Assembly (NCBI RefSeq): GCF_020745735.1
Contig: NC_083409.1
Span: 10,576,978-10,640,977, forward strand
Origin: Hemiscyllium ocellatum
Taxonomy: Eukaryota
Reading direction: 5' to 3'
Length of the DNA: 64,000 nucleotides
Within the stretch, counting starts at the first letter, position 1. Each line of letters begins with the position of its first letter. The notes under the pieces were generated by a model. That model had not been told where the DNA came from, did no database searches, and worked only from the letters and a program-made list of their open reading frames with translations. Of the stretch, positions 10,843 to 63,620 are shown piece after piece. The position numbers and the translations under genes were made by a program.

Positions 10843-11665
10843 GGTTAGGGTACGGGTTAGGTTACGGGTTAGGGTTTGGGTTTGGTTAGGGTTCGGGTTA
10901 GGTTTTGGGTTAGAGTTTGGGTTAGAGTTGGGGTAGGGGTTGGGGTTGGGGTTGGGGTTGGGGTTTGGGTTTGGGTTTGGGTTGCGGTATAGGTTAGGTT
11001 TAGGGTTGGGGTTAGGGTTAGCGTTTGGGTTTGGGTTCAGGTTAGGGTTTGGGTTCGGGTTTGGGTTTGTGTTAGGGTTCGGGTTTGAGTTAGGTTTTGG
11101 GTTAGAGTTTGGGTTATGGTTGGGGTTGGGGTTGGGGTTTGGGTTTGGGTTAGGGTTAGGGTTAGGGTTACGGTTTAGGTTAGGGTATGGATTAGGGTTC
11201 GGGTTCAGGTTCGNNNNNNNNNNNNNNNNNNNNNNNNNNNNNNNNNNNNNNNNNNNNNNNNNNNNNNNNNNNNNNNNNNNNNNNNNNNNNNNNNNNNNNN
11301 NNNNNNNNNNNNNNNNNNNNNNNNNNNNNNNNNNNNNNNNNNNNNNNNNNNNNNNNNNNNNNNNNNNNNNNNNTGGGTAAGGTTTCAGGTTCAGGTTCGG
11401 GTTAGGGTTGGGTTTTGTGTTAGGGTTAGGGTTAGGGTTTGTGTTCGGGTTAGGATTAGGGTTTGGGTTTGGGTTAGGGTATGGGTTAGGGTTAGGGTTT
11501 GGAATTAGGGTTAGGGTTTGGGTTAGGGTTAGGGTTAGGGTTAGGGTTTGGGTTAGGGTACGGGTTAGGGTTCGGGTTCAGGTTCAGGTTAGGGTTGGGT
11601 TCTGGGTTATGGTTAGTGTTAGGGTTAGTGTTCGGGTTAGGATTAGGGTTTAGGTTTGGGTTTGG
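10843..11665 (+). repeat. Interstitial telomeric-type array: TTAGGG mixed with variants (TTTGGG, TTCGGG, TTGGGG, TATGGG, TACGGG, TTCAGG)
   Basis: Direct reading; the G-rich strand is + on both sides of the gap; (GGGTTA)n runs occur, e.g. near 11523-11546. Confidence 0.93.
11214..11373. other. Assembly gap (160 N) inside the telomeric array
   Basis: Run of n. Confidence 0.99.
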
Positions 11666-12254: not shown

Positions 12255-12351
12255 CAGGAAGTGTGGGGGGCTGACGTGGCTCCCTCTGCCTGATGCTATT
12301 TACATACTGAGGAACACCCAGTCAGACTCACACAGGCTGCAGCTTTATAAA
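12255..12351 (+). promoter_or_regulatory. Ig V promoter: ETS site CAGGAAGT (12255), CRE-like TGACGTGG (12272), octamer variant ATTTACAT (12298-12305), TATAAA (12346-12351)
   Basis: Motif order and spacing upstream of the leader ATG at 12412 match Ig light-chain promoters. Confidence 0.7.
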
Positions 12352-12411: not shown

Positions 12412-12460
12412 ATGATTTCACACACCCAGCTGATCTGGCCCCTGGCATTCTGTGTCGCAG
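12412..12460 (+). pseudogene. IGKV: Ig kappa-type light-chain leader exon (MISHTQLIWPLAFCVA-G)
   Basis: ATG, hydrophobic signal peptide, phase-1 GT donor at 12461, AG acceptor at 12645-12646 in frame with V. Confidence 0.9.
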
Positions 12461-12646
12461 GTACAAATCTCTCTCCTTCCACCTTGAATCTTTAGCTGCT
12501 CTCCATTTCACTCCAATTCCACTGACTTGTGATTGAAGGGAAAATGCTGAAACCAGAGGAATGCTCAGTGTCTCCAACAATCTCTCATTTGACTGGCTCT
12601 TTCTGTGACAGTTCTGACTTCACTGTGTTCCTCTCTGACCCCTCAG

Positions 12647-12977
12647 GTATCAGTGGGGACATCATCATGACTCAGTCTCCCCCGGTGCTGTCAGTGGAAC
12701 TGGGCCAGACCGCAACCATCACCTGTAAATCCAGTCAGAGTGCCAGTGGTGATGTTGAATGGTTCCAGCAGCGGGAAGGACAGAAACCCTCTCTCCTGAT
12801 CTACAATGCTGCATCACTATTCACAGGAGTCTCAAACAGATTCACCGGGACAGAAGTGTCCAGCACACATTTCACCCTGACAATCAGCAACGTTCAGAAT
12901 GAGGATGTCGCTGATTATTACTGTCAGCAAAGTGAGAGCTTCCCTTACGTTCGGTAAAGGAACCAAACTCCGACTGA
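12647..12977 (+). pseudogene. IGKV: Pre-joined V-J exon of a kappa-type (NS4-like) light chain; junction out of frame, TAA at 12955-12957
   Basis: [31 protein letters not shown] abuts J (TTC GGT AAA GGA ACC AAA CTC CGA CTG = FGKGTKLRL) with no RSS or spacer; J frame is offset from V frame; GTAAGT donor at 12978. Confidence 0.93.
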
Positions 12978-12983
12978 GTAAGT

Positions 12984-13322
12984 AAACCCTTTCAATATCA
13001 AACTTGCTAAAACACAAATGCTGAATTGTTGAAGGTGTTAGTGGGAAGCTGCAGTGAATGAAATGGTTGATTGAGGAGCACTGTGTTTAACAGGGTGTCC
13101 AGCTGTATTTCTTTAGTTCCATTGCCCCCTTTAAGCAAGACAGAAGTCAGGAAGTTTACTCACTGTGTGGAGGAGCTCTGTCCATTTGCAGCCTGTGGTC
13201 CCATTCCTGCAGCATGGAGTGAAATCAGTGAGTAGCCTCCTGCCAGTCTCAGTGTGACGGACACGGGGCAGAGTTTGATGTGAGCTCTGGCTCCCTGTCC
13301 CAGTCTCTGATCTCACTGACCT

Positions 13323-13354
<32 letters not shown>

Positions 13355-13420
13355 CAGTGAGACACCGAGCTCCCACCTCCACCAGCTTTAACTCTACTCA
13401 ATCACACAATCACAAAACTG
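12984..13420 (+). promoter_or_regulatory. J-proximal non-repetitive intron block conserved with the inverted paralog 63100-63540 (candidate intronic enhancer)
   Basis: Colinear reverse-complement match; shared E-box CAGCTG (13100/63394) and RUNX TGTGGTC (13194/63295). Confidence 0.5.
13323..13352 (+). repeat. (CAG)10 microsatellite; the paralog has (CTG)5 at 63156-63170
   Basis: Direct count. Confidence 0.9.
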
Positions 13421-13429
13421 TTACAGTGC

Positions 13430-16400
13430 AAAAGGAGACCATTCTGCCCATCCCATCTGTACTGGCTCTCTGAATGAGCAATTGACTGAGTGTCATTCTC
13501 CTGCCTTCTCCCTGTCACCCTGCACATTGTTCCTTTTCAAATAACAGTCTCATTCCCTTCAGAATGTTTCAATTGAAGCTGCCTCCACCACACTCTCAGG
13601 CAGTGCATTCCACACCTTAACCACTTGCTTCATGAAAATGTTTTTCCTTCTCTCACTTCTGCTTCTTCTATCAATTACTTTCAATCTGTGGCTCTCGCTC
13701 TCAATCCTTTAATGAGAGGGAACATTTTCTCCCTGTTTACTCTGTCCAGACCCCTCCTGATGTTGAATTCCTCAAACAAATCTCCTCTCAGCCTTCTCTT
13801 CTCCAAGGAAGACAGTCTGAACTTCTCCAATATATTTTCATAACTGACGTTCCTCATCCCTGAGCCTTCCATGGGAATTTTCTGTCATGCCATCTGCAAA
13901 ATATTCATATCCTTTGTGAAATATATACCTTTTCTATTCCCCATAGTCCCATTTGCCTGCATTTGGCTCATTTCCTATCCCTTTTCTCTTCCAATGTACC
14001 TGTTCAAATGTTTTTTAAATGTTTTAATCATACTCGCCTCTCCGACTTTCTCTGGCAGTTCATTCAATACCACTGTCTGCCAGAAAGAGGGATACCTCAG
14101 GTCCCTTTTGAATCTTTCCTCTTTCACTTTAAACCGCTGCCCGCTAGGTTTGTACTAACCTACCGTGAGGAAAAGACCTTAGCTAGTCACCTTATCTATG
14201 CCCATTATGATTTTATAAATCTCTAAAATGTCACCCTGAAGCTTCTGAGCTTCCAAAGAAAGTAGCCCTGCTTAACCAGTCTCTCCTTATAACTCAAACC
14301 CTCCAGTCTCGGTGACATCCTTGTCATCCTTTTTACACTCTTTCCAGTTGAATGCTATCCTTCCAATAGCAGGTGGATTGGAAACATGGCCAGACCAACA
14401 TCTTGGGAAGCTGTAATGTCCCAACTCCCATACCCGATGAAGGCAAGTGTACCAAATGCTTTCTTCACCACCCTGTCTACACGTGACACCAGTTTCAATC
14501 CTCTATGTGCGTCCACCCCTTGGTCTCCCTGTTTGACAACACTCCCCATGGCCCCACAATTAACTGTGTTAGCCCTGGCCTGTACCAAAATGCAACACCT
14601 TGCTATTATCTCAATGCATAATGTAAATGTACTCTCAAATAGCCTTCTTCACTGACCATGAAACCGCCAATTTTGGTGTCATCTTCAAACTCACAAACTA
14701 TACTTCCTATATTCTCATTCAATTTGTTTCTATAAATGACGAACAATGATGAACCCGGAAGCAATCCTTTCGCTTGTCACAGGCTTCCAGTCTGAACAGC
14801 AACCCTCTACCACCACACTCTGTCTCCAACCATCAAGCCAATTTTGTATTAATTAACTTGCTCTTCCTGGATCACATTTGATCTAACCTTACTAACCAGA
14901 TGTCCATGCAGGAAATTATCAAAGGCCTTGCTAAAGTCCATGTAGACAATGTCTACCACTCTGCCCTCAGCTATCTTATTGGTCATGTCCTCAAAAAAAT
15001 TTGTAAGACACATTTTCCCACTGACAAAGCCATGTGGACTATCCCTAATCAATCCTTGTCTTTCCAAATGCATTTAGATCCTGTCTATCAAATTCCCCTC
15101 CAACAATTTACCACGATCAGACTCACTGGTCTATAATTCCCTGTGTATTCCTTGCAGATCTCATTAAATAACAGCTCAACATTAGACACACCCCCGTCTT
15201 CCAGCACATCACCCGTGGCTGTTGATGATACAAACATCTCCACAAGGGGCATCACTGTCTCTTCCCAAGCTTCCCACAAAGTATTGGGATGGAGCTGATC
15301 AGGTCCTGGGAATTTATCTATCTTTATGAGTTTAAAGAGCAGATTACCGCACGTCTTCTTCTGTAATATGGGCTCTTCTCAAGACATCAACATTTATTTC
15401 CCAAATTTCCTTCACTTCCATGTCCTTCTCAACTGTAAATACTGAAGCAAAATATTATATTTGTAACTCATTCATACTCTGTTTTAAAATAAAATGTGAA
15501 AAATTCTAAGAGTGAAACATTGGGGGTGATCCATGGGATACGATCCATGATCATGACTTTATGCTGGATTGTCCGTTGTCCTTTTCCATTGTTCCCCTAA
15601 ACTTTATGATACAATGATCACTCTTCCCTAAATGTCCTCTCACTGACACTTGATCTACTTGGATTTCCTCATTCCCAAGATCTAGTTGCTGTCTCAGTTG
15701 ATATTCTGACAATTAAAATCCTGTAATGTTTGCACCTCTCTGTAAATTCCTTGCAGGTTTGCTCCCCTACATCCTTCCCACTAGTCAGTGACCTACAGAC
15801 TGCACTGAACAACCTGATTGCACCTTTTTGTTCCTTATCTTGAACCAAATCGATTCTGTCCTTGACCCCTTTGAGACACCTTCTTTCTCCAGCTCTGCAC
15901 CGATCTCCTTAATCAATCCCACACCTCTCACCCTTTCCCCCCTTTCCTATCTTTCCTGAACACTTTGTATCCAGGAATATTTAACACCCAGTCCTGTCTT
16001 CATTTGAACCTCATCTGTTAGAGCAACAACATCAGATTTCCACTTGGTAATCTGTGTCTGTAATTCCCCAGTCTTATTCCCCACACTCTGTGCAGTCCCA
16101 TACATGCACAGCCAGCCAGATTTAGAATTTATTGCTGGCTCTCTCTCACTCTGACCCTGCCTAGGAAGTTACTACTCCTTACTCTGATGCGAACAATTTT
16201 TTCCAGGGTTCTGTGTTCCTTGGTGTTCCTTCCTGATATTACCCTCCTGGTTCCCACGGCCCTTCAATATTAATTTAAACCCTCTCCAACAGCACCAGCA
16301 AATCACCCCACGAGGAGCTCAATTCCTGCTATGTTCAGGAGCAACCCATCCAGTCTATAGAGGTTGCATCTCCCACCAGGTCATTCCCAAAGACCCAAGA

Positions 16401-19400
16401 ATCTAAAGCCCTCCCTCCTGGACCACATTTCCAGCCCACATCCACCTGTCTTATCTTCCTGTTCCTATCCTCACTTGCATTGGTCATGGGAGTAATCCAA
16501 AGATTCCTATTTTTGAGTTCCTGTTGCGAATTGCCTCCCAAGCTCCCTAAATTCTGACTGCAGGAGCACATCCTTTTTCTCCCTCTGTCACTGGGACCGA
16601 TGTGGACCATGACTGCTGCCTGTTCCCCCTCTCCCCTCAGGGTGCTCTGCAGCCACTCAGTGACATCCTTGACCCTGGCACCAGGGAGACAACACACCAT
16701 CCTGGATTCCCATCTGCAGCTGCAGAAAATCTTATCGATTGCCCTCACTCTCGAATCTCCTCTCACTATCGCTCTTCCAGTTCCTTGTGCCCCCCTGTAC
16801 AGCTTCCCCCCATCTTGGTGCATTGGCTGCATTCCCCAGATGAACCATCATTCTCATCGGGATTCTGAACTGAATTTTTGTTGGAGAGCGGGATGCACTC
16901 AGGGTATTCCTGTACTAGCTGCCTGGTCCTTTTGGACTGTCTGCTGCTTCCCCATTCCCTCTCTCCCTGCGTACTCTGAAGCTGCAGAGTGACCACATCT
17001 AGAAACGTGCTCTCCACGGAGCTCTCAGCCTCACGGACGCTCCACACTGACACCAGCTGCTGCTCAAGCTCCGAAGCCCAGAGCTCCAACTGCTGTCACT
17101 GACCACACTTCCTGCTCACATTGTATTCCAGGAGCAGCTCGGAAGCATTCTGAAGTTCCCACAAGGAACAAGATGCATACTGTCTCCACTCTTTGGTTAT
17201 CTCTTGGCAAAGTTCTAATGACAAACAGCTCCAGCAGGGCTCACAATCCAGAGCTTTCAGTTTTCTGGGGTTTTGCAGAGTCTCTTCAAAAGATATCAGA
17301 ATTAGGCCATTCGCCCCATCAAGTCTGCTGTGCTGTTTGGTCATGTGTTTCTCAAGACTATTCTCCTGCCTTCTTCCCATTATGCTTGTTCGCCTTTCCA
17401 ATCAGGAATCTATCAATGTCTGTCCTAAATACACTCAATGACTTCATCTCCACTGCAATGAGTTCCACAGATTAACCACCCTCTGGCAGAAGAAATTCCT
17501 TCGCATCTCAGTCCTAATGAGTTATCCCTAAATTCTGTGGCTGTACCCTCTGGTCCTTGTTTCACTTACTGGTGGAAACATCTTCTCCACGTCCCTATCC
17601 AGGCCTCTCAGTGTTGTGTAAGTGTATATGTGATCCTCCCATGTCCTTCTGAACTCCATCAAGTACACATCCAGAGTTCTCAACCGCTCCTCATCAGACC
17701 AGGCTGTCACCCCCAGGGTCATTCTTATAAACCTCCTCTGGATCTCCTCTAATACAAGCACATCCCTCCTTAGATATGGGTCCCAAAACTGTTCACAATA
17801 ATCCAAATGCAGCCTGGCCAGAGTCTCATACAGCCTCAGCAGGACACACCTGCTCTTGTATTCTAACTCAGTTGAAATGAATGCTAACATTGCATTTGTC
17901 TTCCTAATTGCCAACTGAACCTACATATTAACCTTAAGAGAAACCTGAAAGAGGCCTCCTGAGCCACTTTGCGTTTCAGGATTCCAAATTTCCCCATTTA
18001 GGAAACAGTTTGAGCCTCTATTCTTCCAACCAAGCTGCATAACCTCACACATTCCCATTTTCTATTCCATCTACCACTCCTTTGCCCACTCTCTGAGCCT
18101 TTCCAAGTCCTTCTGCAGCCTCCCTACTCCTCAACGCTCCCTGTCCCTCACTTCATCTTTGTGTTATCAGCAAATTTAAGAACAATGCCCTCAGTTCCTT
18201 TTCCCTGATCGTTAATATATAATTAATTGTTACATGAATAGCTGAGGTCCCAACACTGCCCCCTGCTGAACTGCAGGAGGCACCAGCTGCCATCCTGCAA
18301 AAGATCCATTTATTCTCACTCTCTACCCATGTCAGTAGAGGACCCCAAACCCCATGGGCTCTTATGTTATTTAGCAGCCTCCTGTGTGGCAACTTGTCAA
18401 AGGCCTTCTGGAAATCCAAATAGATCATGTCCATTGGCTCTCCTTTGTCTAACTTGCTCATTAACTCCTCTTATTACATAGTATTCCAGCTTCTCCCTCT
18501 CAAACTGCAGGGTGAATTCTATCATATCATTGTCACTACCCCCTCAGGGTTCACTCACCTTCAGCTCCCCAATCAGAGCTACCTCATTACACATTAACAA
18601 ATCCAGAATTACCTGTTTCCTTGTGGCTCTACCATAAACTGCTCCAAAAAAAGCCTCTCGCAGACATTCTATGAATTCCTTTCCTTGAGATCCATTCCCA
18701 ACCTGACTTTCCCAGTCCACCTGCATATTGCAGTCCCCATGACTATGTAATAATCCCTTTCTTACATGCCTTTTCTATCTCCTGATTTATTTTCTGACCC
18801 ACATCCTGACGACTGCGCGGAGTCTGGTACATAACTCCCATCAGGGGCTTTGTTCCTTTGTGGTTTCTTAAGTTGACTCACACAGATTCTATGCATTCCC
18901 ACTCAATATTTCCTCTTGCTATCGATAAATTTCAGTTCTTCCTGACAGGATAAACTTTCTCCTCCCACACCCCACCTCCACACCCCTCACACATCTACCT
19001 ATCATTAGAAACATAGAAATATAGAAAATAGCTGCAGGAACAGGCTATTCAGCCCTTCGAGCCTGCACCACCGTTCAATATGATCATGGCTGATTATGTA
19101 ATCTCAGTTTCCCATTCCCACCTTCCCCCTATACCCATAAATCCCTTCATCCTCAAGGACCACGTCCCTCTTGATATATATCTAACAAACTGGCCCCACC
19201 AGCTTTCTGTGGTAGAGAATTCCACAGGTTCACATCATCTGAATAACTTAACCCTTAATCGTAGACAGTGACCCCTGGTTCTGAACTTTCCTAATGTTGG
19301 GAACATTCTTCCAGCATCGACCCTGTCAAATCTCATCAGGATTTTATATGTTTCCGTGAGATTCCTCTCAGTCTTCTAAATCCCAGTGAGTACAAGCCCA

Positions 19401-20700
19401 GTCGATCCAGTCTTTCCTCATATGTCAGTCCTGCCATCCCGGGAATCAGTCTGGTGAACCTTCGCTGGATTCCCTCAATAGCAAGAATGTCCTTCCTCAG
19501 ACTAGGAGACCAAAACTGCACACAATACTCAAGGTGAGGCCTCACCAAGGCCTTGTTTAATTCTACAAGACATCCTTACTCCAATACACTGTGAAGGCCA
19601 ACATGCCATTAGCTTTCCTCACTGCCTGCTGCACCTGCATGCCCCCTTTCAATGACACCCAGCTCTCACTGCACCTCACCTTTTCCTAAACGTCCACCAT
19701 TCATTCATAATCTGTTTACCACAAAAGTGGATCATCCCACATTTACCCACATTATGTTGCACTTGCCAAGTATATGTCCACTCAGCCAGCCTGTCCAAGT
19801 CACCCTGCAGCCTCTTAGCATCCTCCTCACAACATACATTGCCACCCAGCTTCATGTCATCTGCAAGTTTGTAGGGATTGCATTCAATTCCTTTGTCCAT
19901 ATCATTTATGTGTATTGTGAACAGCTGGGGTCCCAGCACTGAACCCTGTGGTACCCCACTCATCACTGCCTGCCACTCTGAAAAGGACTCATTTATTCCA
20001 ACTCTCTGCTTTCTATCTGGCAATGAGTTCTCTCTCCATGATAATACATTACATCCAATACCATGGGGCTTAATGTAACTCACTAATCTCTTGTATGGGA
20101 CCTTGTCAAAAGCCTTTTGAAAGCCCAGATACTCACTGTCCACTGAGTTCTGAAGTAGGGTCACTCAATTCGAAACACTAACTTCGATTGCTCTCCACAG
20201 ATGCTGCCAGACCTGCTGAACTTTTTCATCATTTTTGTTGTTATCCACTGATTCAGCCTTGTCTACTCTCTACTGATCACATCCTCAAAAACTTCCAGGA
20301 GATGTGTCAGCCCTAATTTCCCTTTTGTAAATCCATGCTTATTTGGACCGATCCTGTCATTGCTTTCCAAATGCTCGGTTATTGTATCTTTAATAACTGA
20401 CTCCAGCGTTTTCCTCATGTGTAATTCCTCATTTTCACTCTCGTTCCTTTTATTAAAAAGTGGGGTTATATTGGATACTGTCTAGTCCATTGGAACTCTG
20501 TCAGTGTCGACAGAATGCTGGAAAATGATCACCAATGTGTCCACTATTTCTAGACCCACTTTCTTAAGGACTCTGGGATGCAGAACATCAGGCCCTAGCA
20601 TCAGCTTCTCCAAGACCATTTCCTGACTAACAAGGATTACCTTCAGTTCCTCCTTCACACTTGACCCTCTATCCCCTTGCATTTCCTTTCAATAGGATGT
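13430..20700 (-). mobile_element. Stack of nested, decayed CR1 LINE fragments in the cluster-1 J-C intron, including an ORF1 esterase-like piece at about 16300-17200
   Basis: Minus frames: MVCCLPGARVKDVTEWLQ (CR1 ORF1 SGNH-like), DFSKAFD, SGVPQGSVLGPQLF, LADDMKLGG, VRPHLEYCVQFWSP. Confidence 0.82.
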
Positions 20701-20849
20701 GTATCCTTGGATATTTAGTTCCCAGCCCTGATCTCCTTGCAGCCACATCCCTGCGCTACAGGCTCATTTACCTTGTTTCATATACTCGATGCATCGAAGT
20801 ACAACACCTGCAGTGGTGCATTGACTGTCTCCTTCTCATAGTTATCTCC

Positions 20850-21095
20850 TTTAGAATTCATAGAATCCCTACATTGTGGAGGCAGGCCATTCAGCCCAGA
20901 CTGACCCTCCTAAAAGCATCCCACCCACCCTATAATTCCCATGGATAATCCTCCTAACCTACACATCTTTGTGACAATGGGAGGAAACCCACATAGACAC
21001 AGGGAGAATGTGTAAACCCCACACAGACAGTCAGTCGGAATTGAGTCTGTGTTTCCGGAGCTGTGAGACAGCAGTGCTAACCACTGATCCACCAT
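20850..21095 (-). mobile_element. HE1-type V-SINE (older copy)
   Basis: Reverse complement of the HE1 head and V-core. Confidence 0.7.
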
Positions 21096-21551
21096 TCCAC
21101 CCTGCGGGGCCTCAAGTTCAATTCCTCATCCTTTCTATACTCTCTATCCTAGTACTTGATCCGAATGATTTAATAAAGTGTCCTGAGGCCCTACCTTCTT
21201 GAATTAGTTTAAATTCCTTGAAGCTTGATTTACCTTGGTTTGTGTGGTACCACTTTGTCGACCATATTCCGAATGGGTCATGCATTAAGAGACAAAGCCT
21301 TTAAGCTTGTTCTATAGTGACCTTCCCTGCACTTTTAAGTTTCCTCAGTACAATATGACATTCACAACGCTCTGTCCCTTTCCTTTTATTTCCTGGTAAC
21401 AATGAATCCCATCACTAACCAACAATTCTCCCTTCTCCTTTAACTTTCATTTTTCTCATTTTCCATCCAACTGTTCCAGTTACTTTCTCTTTGAATTGTA
21501 TTCAGGCTGATATTTATTCCTGAACAAACGTCACTCAAAATGTTCCTTGGT

Positions 21552-21670
21552 TCATTGTTGCTTGTGGGATCTTGCTGTGTACAATCTGGCTTGCACATTT
21601 CCTATATTACAACAGTGACCACATTTCAAACAAGTCCCACACTGTCTGCAAATGTCTTGGGGACAGCATG
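21552..21670 (+). mobile_element. Deu-domain SINE remnant (SacSINE1/AmnSINE1-like)
   Basis: TCATTG..TGTGGGATCTTGCTGTG..CATTTCCTATATTACAACAGTGAC matches the Deu-domain core as I recall it. Confidence 0.6.
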
Positions 21671-22441
21671 GATCTTTCTTTTCTTTGGATGAACTGGGAG
21701 TCTTTCAGATGTGAAAGATGCCATTCCAATGTTGCACAGTCCTCCTCCTGAACTACAGTTCCTGCTTTGTCCCTCTCTTTTGTGAAAACAGACCGAATGT
21801 TTTCATGAGGAACCATTGCTCCATCTCCCACCCCCGCACACAAGTTCCTTTCCTGCTCTCGAATGGGCCTCACATTCCTTCATTCTCTTGTTCTTTCTGT
21901 GATTATAAAACATCACTGGGATTTCACTGACTTCATCTGGACACAATTCATCCTGTCAGCTCTTTGCTTTCCTCAGGTCCTAGTAAATTTCATCCCTGCA
22001 TTTTGTCTTTCAGCTTACTTTTACCCAATCCCTGACCTGTTTAGTAAAATGGTTTGTTCCCAAATAAAAACTTTTACACTTGTTCCGTGGTTCTCCATTT
22101 CCATCCCTACTCTCAATCTCACTGAGTTCTGATCACTGTCACTGAAATGCTCCCCCATTGATAGCCCTTTCAGCTGCTCACATACATTCCAAAAATGATG
22201 GTCCAAAACTGTCCCTTCTCTTTCACTATCACTTTCTCAGCGGCGATTAGGGATGGATAATAAATGCTGGCCCTTCCAGTGACACTCACATAACAAGAAG
22301 CAATTTTAAAAGTCCCTGTCCTTTTATGGGGCTTGTTAGGTATTGGATACAAATGTTCAAATGGATTGTTTTGCCAGTGAACCTACAGAGTTGAAATCCC
22401 TTTGAATTACAGGGATTAAAATAGTTTCTCTTGTCTTTCAG

Positions 22442-22770
22442 GCCGTGACAACTCTCAGCCCAAGCTGACCCTGCTACCTCCCTCCCCGGAGCAGGTCAAT
22501 GCCAAGGGCACTGCCACCCTGGTGTGCCTTGCCAATCACTTCTATCCCGATGAGCTGGAGGTGCAGTGGAAGAAGGACGGTGCAATCATTTCGGATGGGG
22601 TTCAGACCAGCAACTACCTGCGAGCTTCGGACAGCACCTACAGTGTCAGCAGCCTGCTGACCCTCTCTGGGTCTGACTGGGAGTCTGACGCTCGCTTCTC
22701 CTGTGCCCTCACCCACGTGACCCTCCCCTCTCCCCTCAGCAAGAGCATCAAGAGATCAGAATGTGTGTAG
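22442..22770 (+). CDS. IGKC: Ig kappa-type light-chain constant exon, intact (RDNSQPKLTLLPPSPEQVNAKGTATLVCLANHFYPDELEVQWKKDG...FSCALTHVTLPSPLSKSIKRSECV)
   Basis: Polypyrimidine tract plus AG at 22440-22441, phase 1 matching the J donor, C1-set Cys-Trp-Cys, C-terminal interchain Cys. Confidence 0.95.
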
Positions 22771-57164: not shown

Positions 57165-58028
57165 ATGAGTAAAGGGAAGGGACCAGGCGGCTCTAAGAAA
57201 GCAGGGACCCCTCCCCCACCCTCTCCCTCTTCAGCTGCAACAAAGGTGTCTTCAGCCACTTCAGGAGATTTACCAATGAAGATGAGCTTTGAGGAGATGT
57301 TTGCCAGGTGGGAGGCGAAGATTGATGCTTTTATCGATGAGTCTCGGCAGAGCAGAGAAGCACTATCAGCCGAGCTGCAGAAGCAGGGCAGAGACATTCA
57401 GGAATTGGAGTGCCGAGTCAGAGAGGTGGAGTCGAAGGCCGCAGCCTCAGAGACTGCGATAAAATCAACAGCCGACCACATCCGTTTTCTCGAGAATCGA
57501 GTCCAGAACCTAGAAAACCACATTGATGATCTCGAAAATCGATGTCGTAGAAAAAATATTCGGTTGTTGGGCCTGCCCGAGCAGGAAGAGGGAGGTCAGC
57601 TGACAGCATTCTTAGAGCATTGGCTGCCACAGCTTTTAAATCTGCCTGCTGGATCAGGCCAGGTAAGGGTAGAATGGGCCTACCGGGTCACAGTACGTGG
57701 GCCCGGCTCAACCCAGCGCCCACGCCCGGTCCTGTTCCAGCTGCAGAGCTATAGGGAGAGGCAGATGCTCCTGGAAGCCTCAAGAAATCTGGGAAAAGAT
57801 CCCCAAGCTATGACCCACAAAGGATCCAGGATCATGCTGTTCCAGGACTTCTCCCCAGCTTTGGTCCGAAAGAGGAAGGCATTCGATGAGGCGAAGAAGC
57901 GTTTAAGAAACTTAAATATTCAGTACTCCTTACGATATCCAGCGACGCTACGCCTTAGCCACGAAGGATCCATATATAACTTCGGATCACCGGAGAAGGC
58001 TAAGGAATTCTTGGACTCTCTTAAATAA
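57165..58028 (+). CDS. L1 ORF1p (coiled coil, RRM, CTD), intact, 287 aa
   Basis: Heptad region, RRKNIRLLGLPE, RPRPVL, IMLFQDFS, YSLRYPATL. Confidence 0.9.
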   Translation: MSKGKGPGGSKKAGTPPPPSPSSAATKVSSATSGDLPMKMSFEEMFARWEAKIDAFIDESRQSREALSAELQKQGRDIQELECRVREVESKAAASETAIKSTADHIRFLENRVQNLENHIDDLENRCRRKNIRLLGLPEQEEGGQLTAFLEHWLPQLLNLPAGSGQVRVEWAYRVTVRGPGSTQRPRPVLFQLQSYRERQMLLEASRNLGKDPQAMTHKGSRIMLFQDFSPALVRKRKAFDEAKKRLRNLNIQYSLRYPATLRLSHEGSIYNFGSPEKAKEFLDSLK

Positions 58029-58656
58029 ACTGTAAGAGATTGTGGACGCTGGTCTGCCTTTCCCATTATTTTGGTTTACATCCCTTCATCTTTTCTTATC
58101 TTTCCCCCTATGTGTGTATGTATATATATATATATATATGTTGGGGCGTTTGGTTAATGTTGATGGGGAGAGGTGGTTACCTTATTCTATTTTACTTCTG
58201 TTTTTAGGAGCGGGGTTGTTTTTCTTTCCCCTGTTATTTTGTGGTATTATATTTAAGTATTACATGTTGAGATTGTAATCTTATAGTTATATATGGTATT
58301 AATATTCCCAAATATATTTAGATGTGGGTGTGGGTGGGGGTGGGGTGTTCACTGTTAACTCTAGCTTTATATTATATTTGAATTCTCCTCATTTTATTGA
58401 GGAACACCTGGGTCAAGGGTGGGGCACTGGTTGGAAGAGGGTAAGATGGACTGTGGGAGAGGAAGTGACGCTCCCTGGGAACAAGGGAGAAAATCTCCAA
58501 TTCGGAATGTTTTATATTTTTTATACTTAGAAAGAGTTTTTTGTTATATTGTTTTGAGTGTATCAGAGAGTCTTTACTTTTGTAAATCTTGTATGCTCCA
58601 TGCTCGGGATGTTCTAGATAGGATTTCCCCTCCCGAGGGGTCTCGGATCTGTCCAG

Positions 58657-61600
58657 ATGATTATGGCTGAACAGTCGGTTAAGTGGTGCACCTGGAATGT
58701 CAGGGGGAGTAATTCGCCAGTTAAAAGGAAGAAAATATTATCAAATCTTAAGAAGGAGAGAGTTGATATAGCTCTCCTACAGGAGACACACCTGTCGGAT
58801 AAAGAACACTTAAAATTACGACAGGGCGGATTTGATCAGGCCTTTTTTTCCTCTTTTAATTCAAAAAGCAGGGGAGTCGTTATCCTTGTCCGGAAGAACT
58901 TCCCTTTGAAAATTCTAAATCAGATAAAAGACGAATCTGGACGATATATTTTGATTAAAGCCCTCATAAATGGAGAGGAATATGGGATCTTAAATGTGTA
59001 CTGCCCCCCGGCACACCCCTTTAAATTCATAACGGAAGCTTTTTCAAAACTGATGGCCTTTGGTGCCCGTCATACAATTATAGGGGGAGACTTTAATTGT
59101 ATTATTGATCCGGAAATAGACAGGATTCCCAAGAGTGCCGCTGGAGTATCTCCCAGATCTAGACAACTGGCGGACCTGAATAAAGAATTAGGATTGGTAG
59201 ATGTATGGAGATGTCTCCATCCACAGGGTAGAGATTTTTCTTTCTACTCTAATCCACATAAATGTCACACAAGAATTGATATGTTTTTTGCCCCATCGAT
59301 TTTTCTAAACTCTATAGCAACCTGTAAAATAGGTACTATAGCAATCTCTGACCATGCCGCTGTATACATGGAAACTAAGGTAAAGAACAATGGGACATTT
59401 GCTCGGCATTGGCGTATGGACCCCTTCCTGATAAAGGATAGCAAATTTTTAAAGTACTTCTCCCAAGAACTTAAAACTTTTTTAGAAATTAATACTGGTA
59501 CGGCTAGCAATCCGTCAATGATGTGGGAGACCATCAAAGCCTATGCACGAGGTTTGATCATCTCCTATTCAGCGACCCAGAGGAAAATGAAGGGAGAGCA
59601 ACAGCGTCTGCTCGAAGCTCGCCTAAAAGCAGCCGAAACAGCATACGCTGATAGACCTTCTATCACAAAATTGCAGAGGATTACAGCTCTTAGGACAGCT
59701 TTAAACACCGCGCTTACTCAAACGGCTAAAAGGGAAATATTATTTGCGAAACAAAGATTATATGAATATGGCGACAAACCGGGTAGATACTTAGCATTTC
59801 TTGCAAAGAAAAAGGAAGCCCCTCAAACTATTCCGACCATCAAGGAAAGTACAGGTACCCTGACTCATGATCATAAAAAGATCAATGCGACCTTTAAAGA
59901 ATTTTATTCTGAACTATATAGATCGCAGGATTGTGAAGATAGGATTAGGAGGATGCAGTCATTTTTTTAAAATTTGACCTTCCCGGGCCTGACTCCGGAA
60001 CAGGTGTCGGCCCTAAATACCCCTTTAACAGTCCAAGAAATACTTGAGGCAATTAGGCAACTTCAGAGCGGAAAAGCACCGGGCCCGGATGGTTTTCAAG
60101 CTGAATTCTATAAAGAATTTACAGGAATATTGGTTGACCCACTTATGGATATGTATAATTTTGCGCATAGTCAGGTCTGTCTCCCGCCCACGCTGAAAGA
60201 AGCAAATATTTCTCTTATCCTCAAAAAAGGAAAAGACCCAGAAGATTGTGCATCTTACAGACCAATATCCTTACTAAATGTAGACTTTAAAATTCTCTCA
60301 AAAATGTTAGCACTAAGACTAGAAAGGGTACTGCCATATATTATAAAGGAGGACCAGACGGGATTTATTAAGGGCCGCAGATCATCCAATAATATCAGAA
60401 GGGTCTTGAATATGATCCAAGCCTGTCATCAGGGAAAGATACCAGGAGTAGTAATTTCATTGGATGCGGAAAAGGCATTTGATAGGGTTGAATGGTCATA
60501 TTTATTTTACACATTGGAAAGGTTTGGCGTTGGACAGGTGTTTACCAAATGGGTTTCAACATTGTATAATGACCCCAAAGCAGCTGTTATTACTAATGGG
60601 TTAAGATCGGATGGCTTCAGTGTGGGTAGGGGCTGCCGTCAAGGATGTCCTCTCTCACCATTGTTGTTTACACTGATAATCGAACCATTAGCAGAAGCCA
60701 TCCGGACTGATCCTAATATAACGGCCCCGAGGATTGGTACAGGTAAACACAAAATTATCCTCTATGCAGATGACGTTCTCTTATTCCTCAGTAATCCTTT
60801 AATGTCAGTGCCTCGTCTAATTCAAGTTATTAATACATTTAGTGCATTCTCAGGCTATAAAATTAATTTTTCAAAATCGGAAGCCATGCCAATGGGTGGT
60901 CTGGCTATGATACCCCACTTAATGGACGGATCCCCTTTTCCCTTCCGTTGGTCCCTGGAGGGCTTCTTATATTTAGGTATTTTTATCACGCCAGTATTTG
61001 ATCAGCTGTATAGGGCTAATTTTGTACAATTAATGGAAAGGATAAGGCAGGCATGGAGCGATGGAGAGACCTTCCGATTTCCTGGCTAGGGAGAATAGCA
61101 TTAATTAAAATGAATGTTCTGCCCCGTCTCTTATATCCTATGAGAATGCTCCCGCTGATGCTGCCAAGGCTAGCCCTACGTAAATTATATGGCTGGTTGG
61201 GCTCCTTTATTTGGAACCATAGACGGCCCCTTATTAAGCTGAAGAAGCTACAGCTTCCACAGGCAAGGGGAGGACTGGACTTCCCAGACTTTAGGAAATA
61301 TCAGTTAAGCTCCCTACTAAGTTACATAGCTGATTGGGTTTCATCTGATCCACAATCAATTTGGCTGGATATCGAAGCCTCCCAAGTAAAATACCCACTT
61401 ATTAACCTTTTATTTTCAGATAAGAGGAAAATCATTACAGACCACTGTAAAAATCCCATAATATTAAACACAATTAAGGCCTGGAATATAATGCGGCAAA
61501 ATGAGGGTAACTCACATAAAACATCCCCCCATGCACCAATAGTAGGCGCATGGGGATTCCAACCGGGGATTACAGATGCCACCTTTAAACTCTGGAGATC

Positions 61601-62594
61601 CAGGGGCATCTCATGCTTAGGGGACCTATTTAAAGATGGGATCCTGATGTCCTTTGAGCAGCTGCGTCTGAAATTCGGAATACCTAATGGGGATCTCTTT
61701 CGATACTTCCAAGTTCGAGATTATATACAGAGGAAGACTACATTAATAGATAGTCTTTATAAATCAGACAGAGAACGTAATGTCTTACGACCAGCAGGGG
61801 CATCCTCCGTTAGTACTATATACCATTTGCTACATGATGGAGTCTCAGGAGACATGGATGACCTGCTTAAAACATGGGAGCAGGACTTGGGGCTAGAAAT
61901 CTCTGAGGATATGTGGAATGACATTTGGGAAAATGCTAGAAGAATTGCTATCTGTAACAGAACTCAGGCTATCCAACTAAAGATACTTCATAGGGCCCAT
62001 ATAGCTCCGGCTCGACTGGCAAAATTTAAGGCAGGAGCATCTCCAATGTGTCCTAAATGCAAAATAGAGGTGGGTACTCTTGTACATTGTCTGTGGACTT
62101 GTCAGAAAATCCGCAGATACTGGACTAAAGTGGCAAATACCCTGACAGAAATTTTAGGAACGGAAATTAGGGTGGACCCTGTATCTCTCCTTTTGGGCTT
62201 TTCGAACCTCTCATCTCTGGATATGCATGGGAAGAGACTATTTTCTATTCTCTCTTTCTGTGCAAGGAAAAATATTTTGGTGAACTGGGTGGCTGAGGGC
62301 CCCCCTGGACTTTCAAACTGGCACAGATTAATTATGGAATATATCCCCCTTGACTTCCTCACAAATATGGTGCACCGAAAGACTGAATTATTTTATAAAA
62401 TATGGCAGCCCTTTTTGAATTATATAAATGCAGATATTTCGGCTATCCTAACAAGGGCTTTTATTTGTGAAGATTTCAGACCGGGCTGCTCCGGGGCCCC
62501 TTGGGAGAGGAATCCTGCGCGAATACGGGTTTTATTATATTTGATGTTTATACATTCCGAGCATGTAAGAGACTTAGGTATACACTCTGGTTAG
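58657..62594 (+). pseudogene. L1 ORF2 (APE endonuclease, RT, CCHC) with one in-frame stop (59968-59970) and one frameshift (about 61050)
   Basis: WNVRG, LQETH, GGDFN, SDH; YRPISLLN, LDAEKAFD, GCRQGCPLSP, YADD; CPKC-x8-H-x4-C. Confidence 0.92.
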
Positions 62595-63546: not shown

Positions 63547-63581
63547 TCTGTCTGAGTTTAGTTCCTTAACCGAACGTGTAA
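63547..63581 (-). pseudogene. IGKJ: Unrearranged kappa J segment, Y-T-F-G-stop-G-T-K-L-R-Q, with a GC splice donor
   Basis: Minus strand T TAC ACG TTC GGT TAA GGA ACT AAA CTC AGA CAG A|GCAAGT. Confidence 0.9.
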
Positions 63582-63620
63582 CACAGTGAGAGCTCCCAGT
63601 GCAGAGGCTGTACAAAAACC
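63582..63620 (-). promoter_or_regulatory. Perfect 23-bp-spacer recombination signal sequence of J
   Basis: CACAGTG (63582-63588), 23 nt, ACAAAAACC (63612-63620) on +, facing J as in kappa loci. Confidence 0.96.

Follow-up and report, generated by a model that had tools for sequence, protein, structure and literature searches.

In the nurse shark, about 10% of the roughly 50 NS4 genes are joined in the germline (Lee, Fitch, Flajnik and Hsu, J Exp Med 2000; PMC2193156). These joined genes have several independent origins from split genes, through RAG-like joining in germ cells, and their joints display trimming, N additions that are few or absent and little trace of TdT activity (PMC2193156). 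Two of the six joined NS4 genes that were described, R6 and R19, are pseudogenes, the frame of R19 being restored if one CDR3 nucleotide is omitted (PMC2193156). The in-frame R4, R7 and R18, for their part, are joined NS4 genes expressed in the neonatal spleen and epigonal organ. Finally, the leader intron of the nurse-shark NS4 genes has a length of 186 bp (Lee et al. 2000; PMC2193156), which is also that of the gene described here.

The window, i.e. the whole 64-kb stretch of Hemiscyllium ocellatum DNA that was analysed, contains two shark kappa (NS4/type III) light-chain clusters placed tail to tail. In cluster 1, the leader, the VJ and the single C exon all lie on one strand, and the V domain and the FGXG motif of J are contiguous in a single exon, with neither RSS nor spacer. 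The features of this joined gene, together with the J of cluster 2, are the following:

12297-12304, plus strand: octamer-like promoter element ATTTACAT, a variant conserved in two split homologues of Chiloscyllium punctatum
12344-12351, plus strand: TATA-like box TTTATAAA, invariant in a three-way alignment, of putative function
12412-12460, plus strand: leader exon (MISHTQLIWPLAFCVA plus 1 nt), with the ATG at 12412
12461-12646, plus strand: leader intron, 186 bp, GT..AG
12647-12977, plus strand: fused VJ exon (V and J in one exon)
12647-12946, plus strand: V-derived part, comprising the leader end and FR1 to CDR3, up to …TTC CCT T (Pfam V-set, E 4.7e-18)
12944-12946, plus strand: CTT of the junction, a 3-nt overlap that the V end (CCTTGG) and the J start (GCTTACG) could each supply
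12947-12977, plus strand: J-derived part, ACG TTC GGT AAA GGA ACC AAA CTC CGA CTG A
12955-12957, plus strand: premature TAA stop in the V reading frame
12977/12978, plus strand: J splice donor, A followed by GTAAGT
12978-22441, plus strand: J-C intron of ~9.5 kb, donor GTAAGT, acceptor TTTCAG, with repeat-derived stretches
22442-22770, plus strand: kappa C exon, intact, TAG stop included (Pfam C1-set, E 1.3e-22)
63547-63620, minus strand: split J and 23-RSS of cluster 2 (heptamer 63582-63588, spacer 63589-63611, nonamer 63612-63620)

The kappa identity of the joined gene is established by its V-set and C1-set domains, as well as by relatives that carry a 12-RSS on the V side and a 23-RSS on the J side. 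The protein search returned 13 candidates which, with the exception of a weak mammalian match, all belong to Chiloscyllium or Scyliorhinus, the best of them being C. punctatum kappa V genes with up to 89% amino-acid identity. More precisely, the V is 73-89% identical at the amino-acid level to the Chiloscyllium V genes and 80% identical to one from Scyliorhinus, and none of these 13 candidates carries the junction of the joined gene. Five C. punctatum clusters, L001, L002, L004, L005 and L006, are split: CACAGTG, a 12-nt spacer and ACAAAAACC come after the V end, the J is preceded by GGTTTTTGT, a 23-nt spacer and CACTGTG, and about 450-690 bp separate these two signals. The V-J gap of the split relatives was also put at about 670 bp, the two RSS not included. 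The V of the joined gene is 93% identical to the split V of L001, with homology stopping at 12946, while its J matches those of L001, L002 and L004, flank included, at 91% identity. Further downstream, the J-C intron is homologous to the introns of the C. punctatum clusters, its first 2.9 kb being 91% identical to that of L002, and leads to a C exon located 9.5 kb away. With ~89% identity upstream, 89-93% over V and ~91% over the J flank for L001, L002 and L004, no clear ortholog or split ancestor emerges from this comparison.

Two observations can be added with regard to these relatives. The split kappa cluster L004:3217-3915 (C. punctatum BEZZ01008857.1), whose J begins with GCTTACG, provides the best match to the window in the sequence lying just past the J donor (GTAAGTAAACCCTTT), but its overall flank identity of ~91% does not mark it as the ortholog. 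Besides, the leader intron (12461-12646) is nearly invariant compared to L001 and L002, with a cross-species conservation above that of the V-exon CDRs, which suggests either constraint on the intron or homogenisation within the gene family.

The fusion, the frame and the stop can be observed directly in the window. From 12922 onward, the sequence reads TGT CAG CAA AGT GAG AGC TTC CCT TAC GTT CGG TAA, and the J motif TTC GGT AAA GGA ACC AAA CTC CGA CTG A begins at 12950. Since (12950-12922) mod 3 = 1, the J frame is shifted by +1 relative to that of V, and the V frame therefore terminates at the TAA located at 12955-12957; in its own frame, the J-derived part (12947-12977) encodes FGKGTKLRL. 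The first-pass annotation had described a V abutting J without RSS and a join 2 nt short of the canonical frame. The sequence of 12647-12977 bears out the former, and the latter is accurate as well, the join being equally 1 nt long given the frame offset of 1. No heptamer or nonamer was found between the V and the J of the joined gene, the nearest CACTGTG/CACAGTG matches being situated at 12621 in the leader intron and at 13079, 13161 and 13353 in the J-C intron. These four sites were considered as cryptic RSS for a secondary rearrangement but, being intronic, were taken as chance matches.

An open VJ reading frame extending through the J donor, as needed by a functional joined chain, is absent due to the TAA at 12955-12957, and the joined gene can encode no light chain. 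Its other parts are intact, in agreement with what had been claimed of the leader, the splice sites and the C exon: the ATG at 12412, the GT..AG leader intron, the GTAAGT donor and the C1-set exon are all observed, leaving the junction frame as the sole defect. The octamer ATTTACAT was also examined as a potential lesion, in view of its difference from the canonical ATTTGCAT, and was rejected on the grounds that two split C. punctatum genes share it exactly. Judged from these sequences, the variant is the normal form for this kappa family and would not constitute a defect.

Where do the bases of the junction come from? The split V ends and J starts of the relatives, which are directly observable, are informative in this respect. 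Ahead of the heptamer, the split V genes end in …TGG CCT TGG (L001), …TGG TCT TGG (L002), …TGG CCT TGA (L004) and …TCC CCT TGA (L006), and contigs of run X10, from another species, continue after 12940 with GGCCTTGG-CACAGTG. These ends indicate that the …TTC CCT T of the window is V-encoded up to 12946, two bases having been trimmed. In the same line, BLAST places the end of V homology at 12946 and the beginning of J homology at 12947. In the window's own species, the end of exactly this V was not observed in a split gene. On the J side, the starts are variable, with GGACACG, GCTTACG, GTACACG and GTTCACG in C. punctatum and TTACACG in cluster 2 of the window. A split germline J that starts with G-CTTACGTTCGG, and is hence devoid of ACAC, is found in L004 of C. 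punctatum, where CACTGTG is directly followed by GCTTACGTTCGGTAAAGG (LTFGKG). The window's own species is represented by runs X1 and X2, the latter from a different sample and study, and in each of them two contigs match the window from 12944 and read …CACTGTGG (also given as …CACTGGGAGCTCTCACTGTGG) ahead of this position. The place of such loose ends was calibrated on those of the splice junctions (12463, 12644 and 12978), as the first or last fitted letter. Since a germline J of the GCTTACG type exists, nothing is missing from the J of the joined gene.

Combining the V (…TTCCCTTGG) with such a J (GCTTACG…) yields TTCC-CTT-ACGTTCGG, with a CTT overlap, every base being templated and none added. 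In fact, each of the observed J types (GGACACG, GCTTACG, GTACACG, GTTCACG and TTACACG) gives the observed junction upon simple trimming and without any untemplated base; an ACACG-type J shortened by four bases leads to an identical product, and the join is out of frame in every case. The junction can thus be derived by trimming of split V and J coding ends, which is the signature of RAG-type joining. Of the origins that had been envisaged by the first-pass annotation, loss of AC by slippage in ACAC is not needed, as the GCTTACG-type J natively lacks ACAC, and the germline V ends of C. punctatum (CCTTGG, TCTTGG and CCTTGA) explain the CCTT bases. An originally non-productive join is the option favoured by the V ends and J starts of the relatives. 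Trimming of the J by 4 nt, which had been proposed along with it, works with an ACACG-type J, whereas a GCTTACG-type J joined through the CTT overlap is more likely. The reading of the join as 2 nt short arose because the junction had been compared with a J of a different (YT) type.

This comparator, the J of cluster 2 (63547-63581, minus strand), was correctly described as beginning with TTACACGTTCGG, and stands directly after CACTGTG, a 23-nt spacer and GGTTTTTGT. The first-pass annotation had left out that a TAA interrupts its FGXG motif (YTFG-stop-G) and that GC takes the place of GT at its splice donor: this J is dead, even though its 23-RSS is perfect and looks live. Other particularities of cluster 2 can be mentioned at that stage. 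Compared to that of cluster 1, its C exon (~48836-49161, minus strand) displays a 1-nt deletion (CCTCCC to CC-CCC) and, ~175 nt past it, a 1-nt insertion (CC-TGC to CCTTGC), a -1/+1 frameshift pair that leaves the frame open but recodes ~58 residues. The C exons of the two clusters are otherwise ~95% identical, their introns being merely 65-87% identical. Homology between these introns is broken by a LINE-type retroelement (57165-62594, plus strand) situated in the J-C intron of cluster 2 and antisense to that cluster, with a 287-aa ORF1-like frame and an ORF2 region that is split into frames of 437, 371 and 513 aa and shows reverse-transcriptase motifs in its later pieces. On the side of cluster 1, positions 11214-11660 hold a 160-base run of N and then ~290 bp of degenerate TTAGGG-like telomeric repeats, an array that stops ~640 bp before the octamer-like element of the cluster 1 promoter.

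In the light of the junction, it is probable that cluster 1 is a germline-joined kappa (NS4/type III) cluster that has been non-productive from the moment of V-J joining. The starting point would have been an ordinary split cluster, from which RAG-type cleavage in a germ-line cell of an ancestor would have excised the V-J spacer of ~0.65 kb together with both recombination signals. Trimming of the V end (…AGC TTC CCT TGG/A) and of a J that most likely began with G-CTT-ACG-TTC would have been followed by ligation without added bases, probably at the CTT common to both ends, so as to give …TTC CCT TAC GTT CGG TAA. J would thereby have come to lie one base out of register, with a stop 11 codons past the CDR3 cysteine. 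We infer RAG as the agent, the germ-cell timing and the joining at the overlap from the form of the junction, and we likewise infer the fate of the transcript from the position of the stop. Given that the promoter elements, the splice sites and the C exon look intact, transcription in B cells would be possible. Such a transcript would carry a premature stop in its second-to-last exon and should undergo nonsense-mediated decay, the pathway by which an mRNA with a stop well upstream of the last exon junction is degraded. In run X14, from another species and probably of RNA, contigs of related kappa genes that extend from leader to V use the same 186-nt GT..AG intron, and J-to-C splicing occurs at the same phase (loose end 12978); this run reveals spliced kappa transcripts generally, and nothing specific to the junction of the joined gene.

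The alternative that survives best, although it seems unlikely, is that of an in-frame joined light chain that was once functional and was later killed by a small indel at the junction, either through loss of AC from TTC CCT TAC ACG TTC (with a YT-type J) or through gain of a C in TTC CTT ACG TTC (with an LT-type J). The ACACG type is indeed the commonest J among the relatives (5 of the 7 seen), the neighbouring J starts with TTACACG, and restoring AC yields a canonical 9-residue kappa CDR3 ending in P-Y-T. Besides, the nurse shark has in-frame joined NS4 genes that are expressed in neonates. This scenario nevertheless needs an extra event, while the split V ends and J starts of the germline, among which a native CTTACG J, suffice to account for the junction, and no inserted or deleted letters at 12940-12960 were reported in four runs from three species, a missing row being no proof in itself. 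The fact that all else in the joined gene is intact could hint at recent function. However, an intact leader and V frame was rejected as a sign of it, since a simulation of neutral change gave odds of 77%, 66% and 51% that leader and V contain no stop at 2%, 3% and 5% divergence, respectively, so that, at low divergence, chance would be expected to leave the frame open. It is unlikely that this gene used to encode, or still encodes in part of the individuals, an in-frame invariant kappa (CDR3 QQSESFPYT or QQSESFLT). If this were true, the assembled copy would be a recently inactivated allele, i.e. a germline-joined receptor caught during its loss.

The preferred reading of an inherited, originally non-productive join presupposes that the fusion is real and present in the germline. 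Record 31 of run X2, a contig of 143 nt, matches 12917-13059 with 0 gaps and 3 mismatches and bridges the junction. In view of the 3 mismatches, this contig may represent an allele or a near-identical joined paralogue. Its depth is 27, compared to 39-52 in the unique flanking unitigs, and in run X1, unitigs with perfect matches in V (12784-12898) and in the unique flanks all have a depth of 9-13. On this sequence evidence, the depths likely reflect inherited DNA and not a rare B-cell clone. An assembly error hiding a functional gene, as had also been suggested, is unlikely, given that the junction is crossed, with 0 gaps, by the contig of a second sample. It is highly improbable that the join or its frame is not of germline origin, be it through misassembly or a wrong consensus at the CCC run, where a one-base error would bring the frame back, or through capture of a somatic B-cell rearrangement: run X1 has no junction-spanning contig explicitly listed, but the contig of X2 comes from another sample and another study and has a depth comparable to that of the unique flanks, the junction is free of indel rows, modern assemblies are not prone to errors in runs of three bases, and somatic joins, confined to a tiny fraction of cells, would not make the consensus.

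By itself, the joined gene is of little weight, germline-joined shark kappa genes, including dead ones, having been known since 2000; it is a real and ordinary example of this class. Its value is corrective, in that the description of a join lacking 2 nt came from a different type of J. In addition, a templated junction without TdT-type additions is in keeping with the literature, in which joins made in germ cells are considered to be devoid of N regions, and a dead join constitutes a record of germ-line RAG activity that is free of selection. A genome-wide census of in-frame versus out-of-frame joined clusters in this assembly could serve to test selective retention, the chance expectation for in-frame joins being about one third.

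Three known systems can finally be compared with this locus, which supports the first-pass proposal of a RAG-joined germline Ig gene of cartilaginous fish, matching the nurse-shark NS4 cases (PMC2193156). Non-productive somatic VJ joins of B cells, above all the TdT-poor ones with short overlaps, share with it trimmed ends, the lack of N bases, a possible CTT overlap and an out-of-frame J, but the join of the window likely resides in the inherited genome, at germline-like depth, and not in a single lymphocyte clone. R4, R7 and R18 belong to the same family, with the same proposed RAG-type joining in germ cells and few or no added bases; they are in frame and expressed, whereas the gene of the window encodes no light chain. 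The closest counterpart is R19, which the joined gene resembles in every tested respect: both pertain to the NS4 kappa family, with the same cluster layout, a 186-bp leader intron, an RSS-free fusion, a junction explained by trimming without N addition and a CDR3 that is one nucleotide over frame, this likeness not implying orthology. R19 has further stop codons elsewhere, whereas the gene of the window is cleaner, the frame of its junction being the only lesion.
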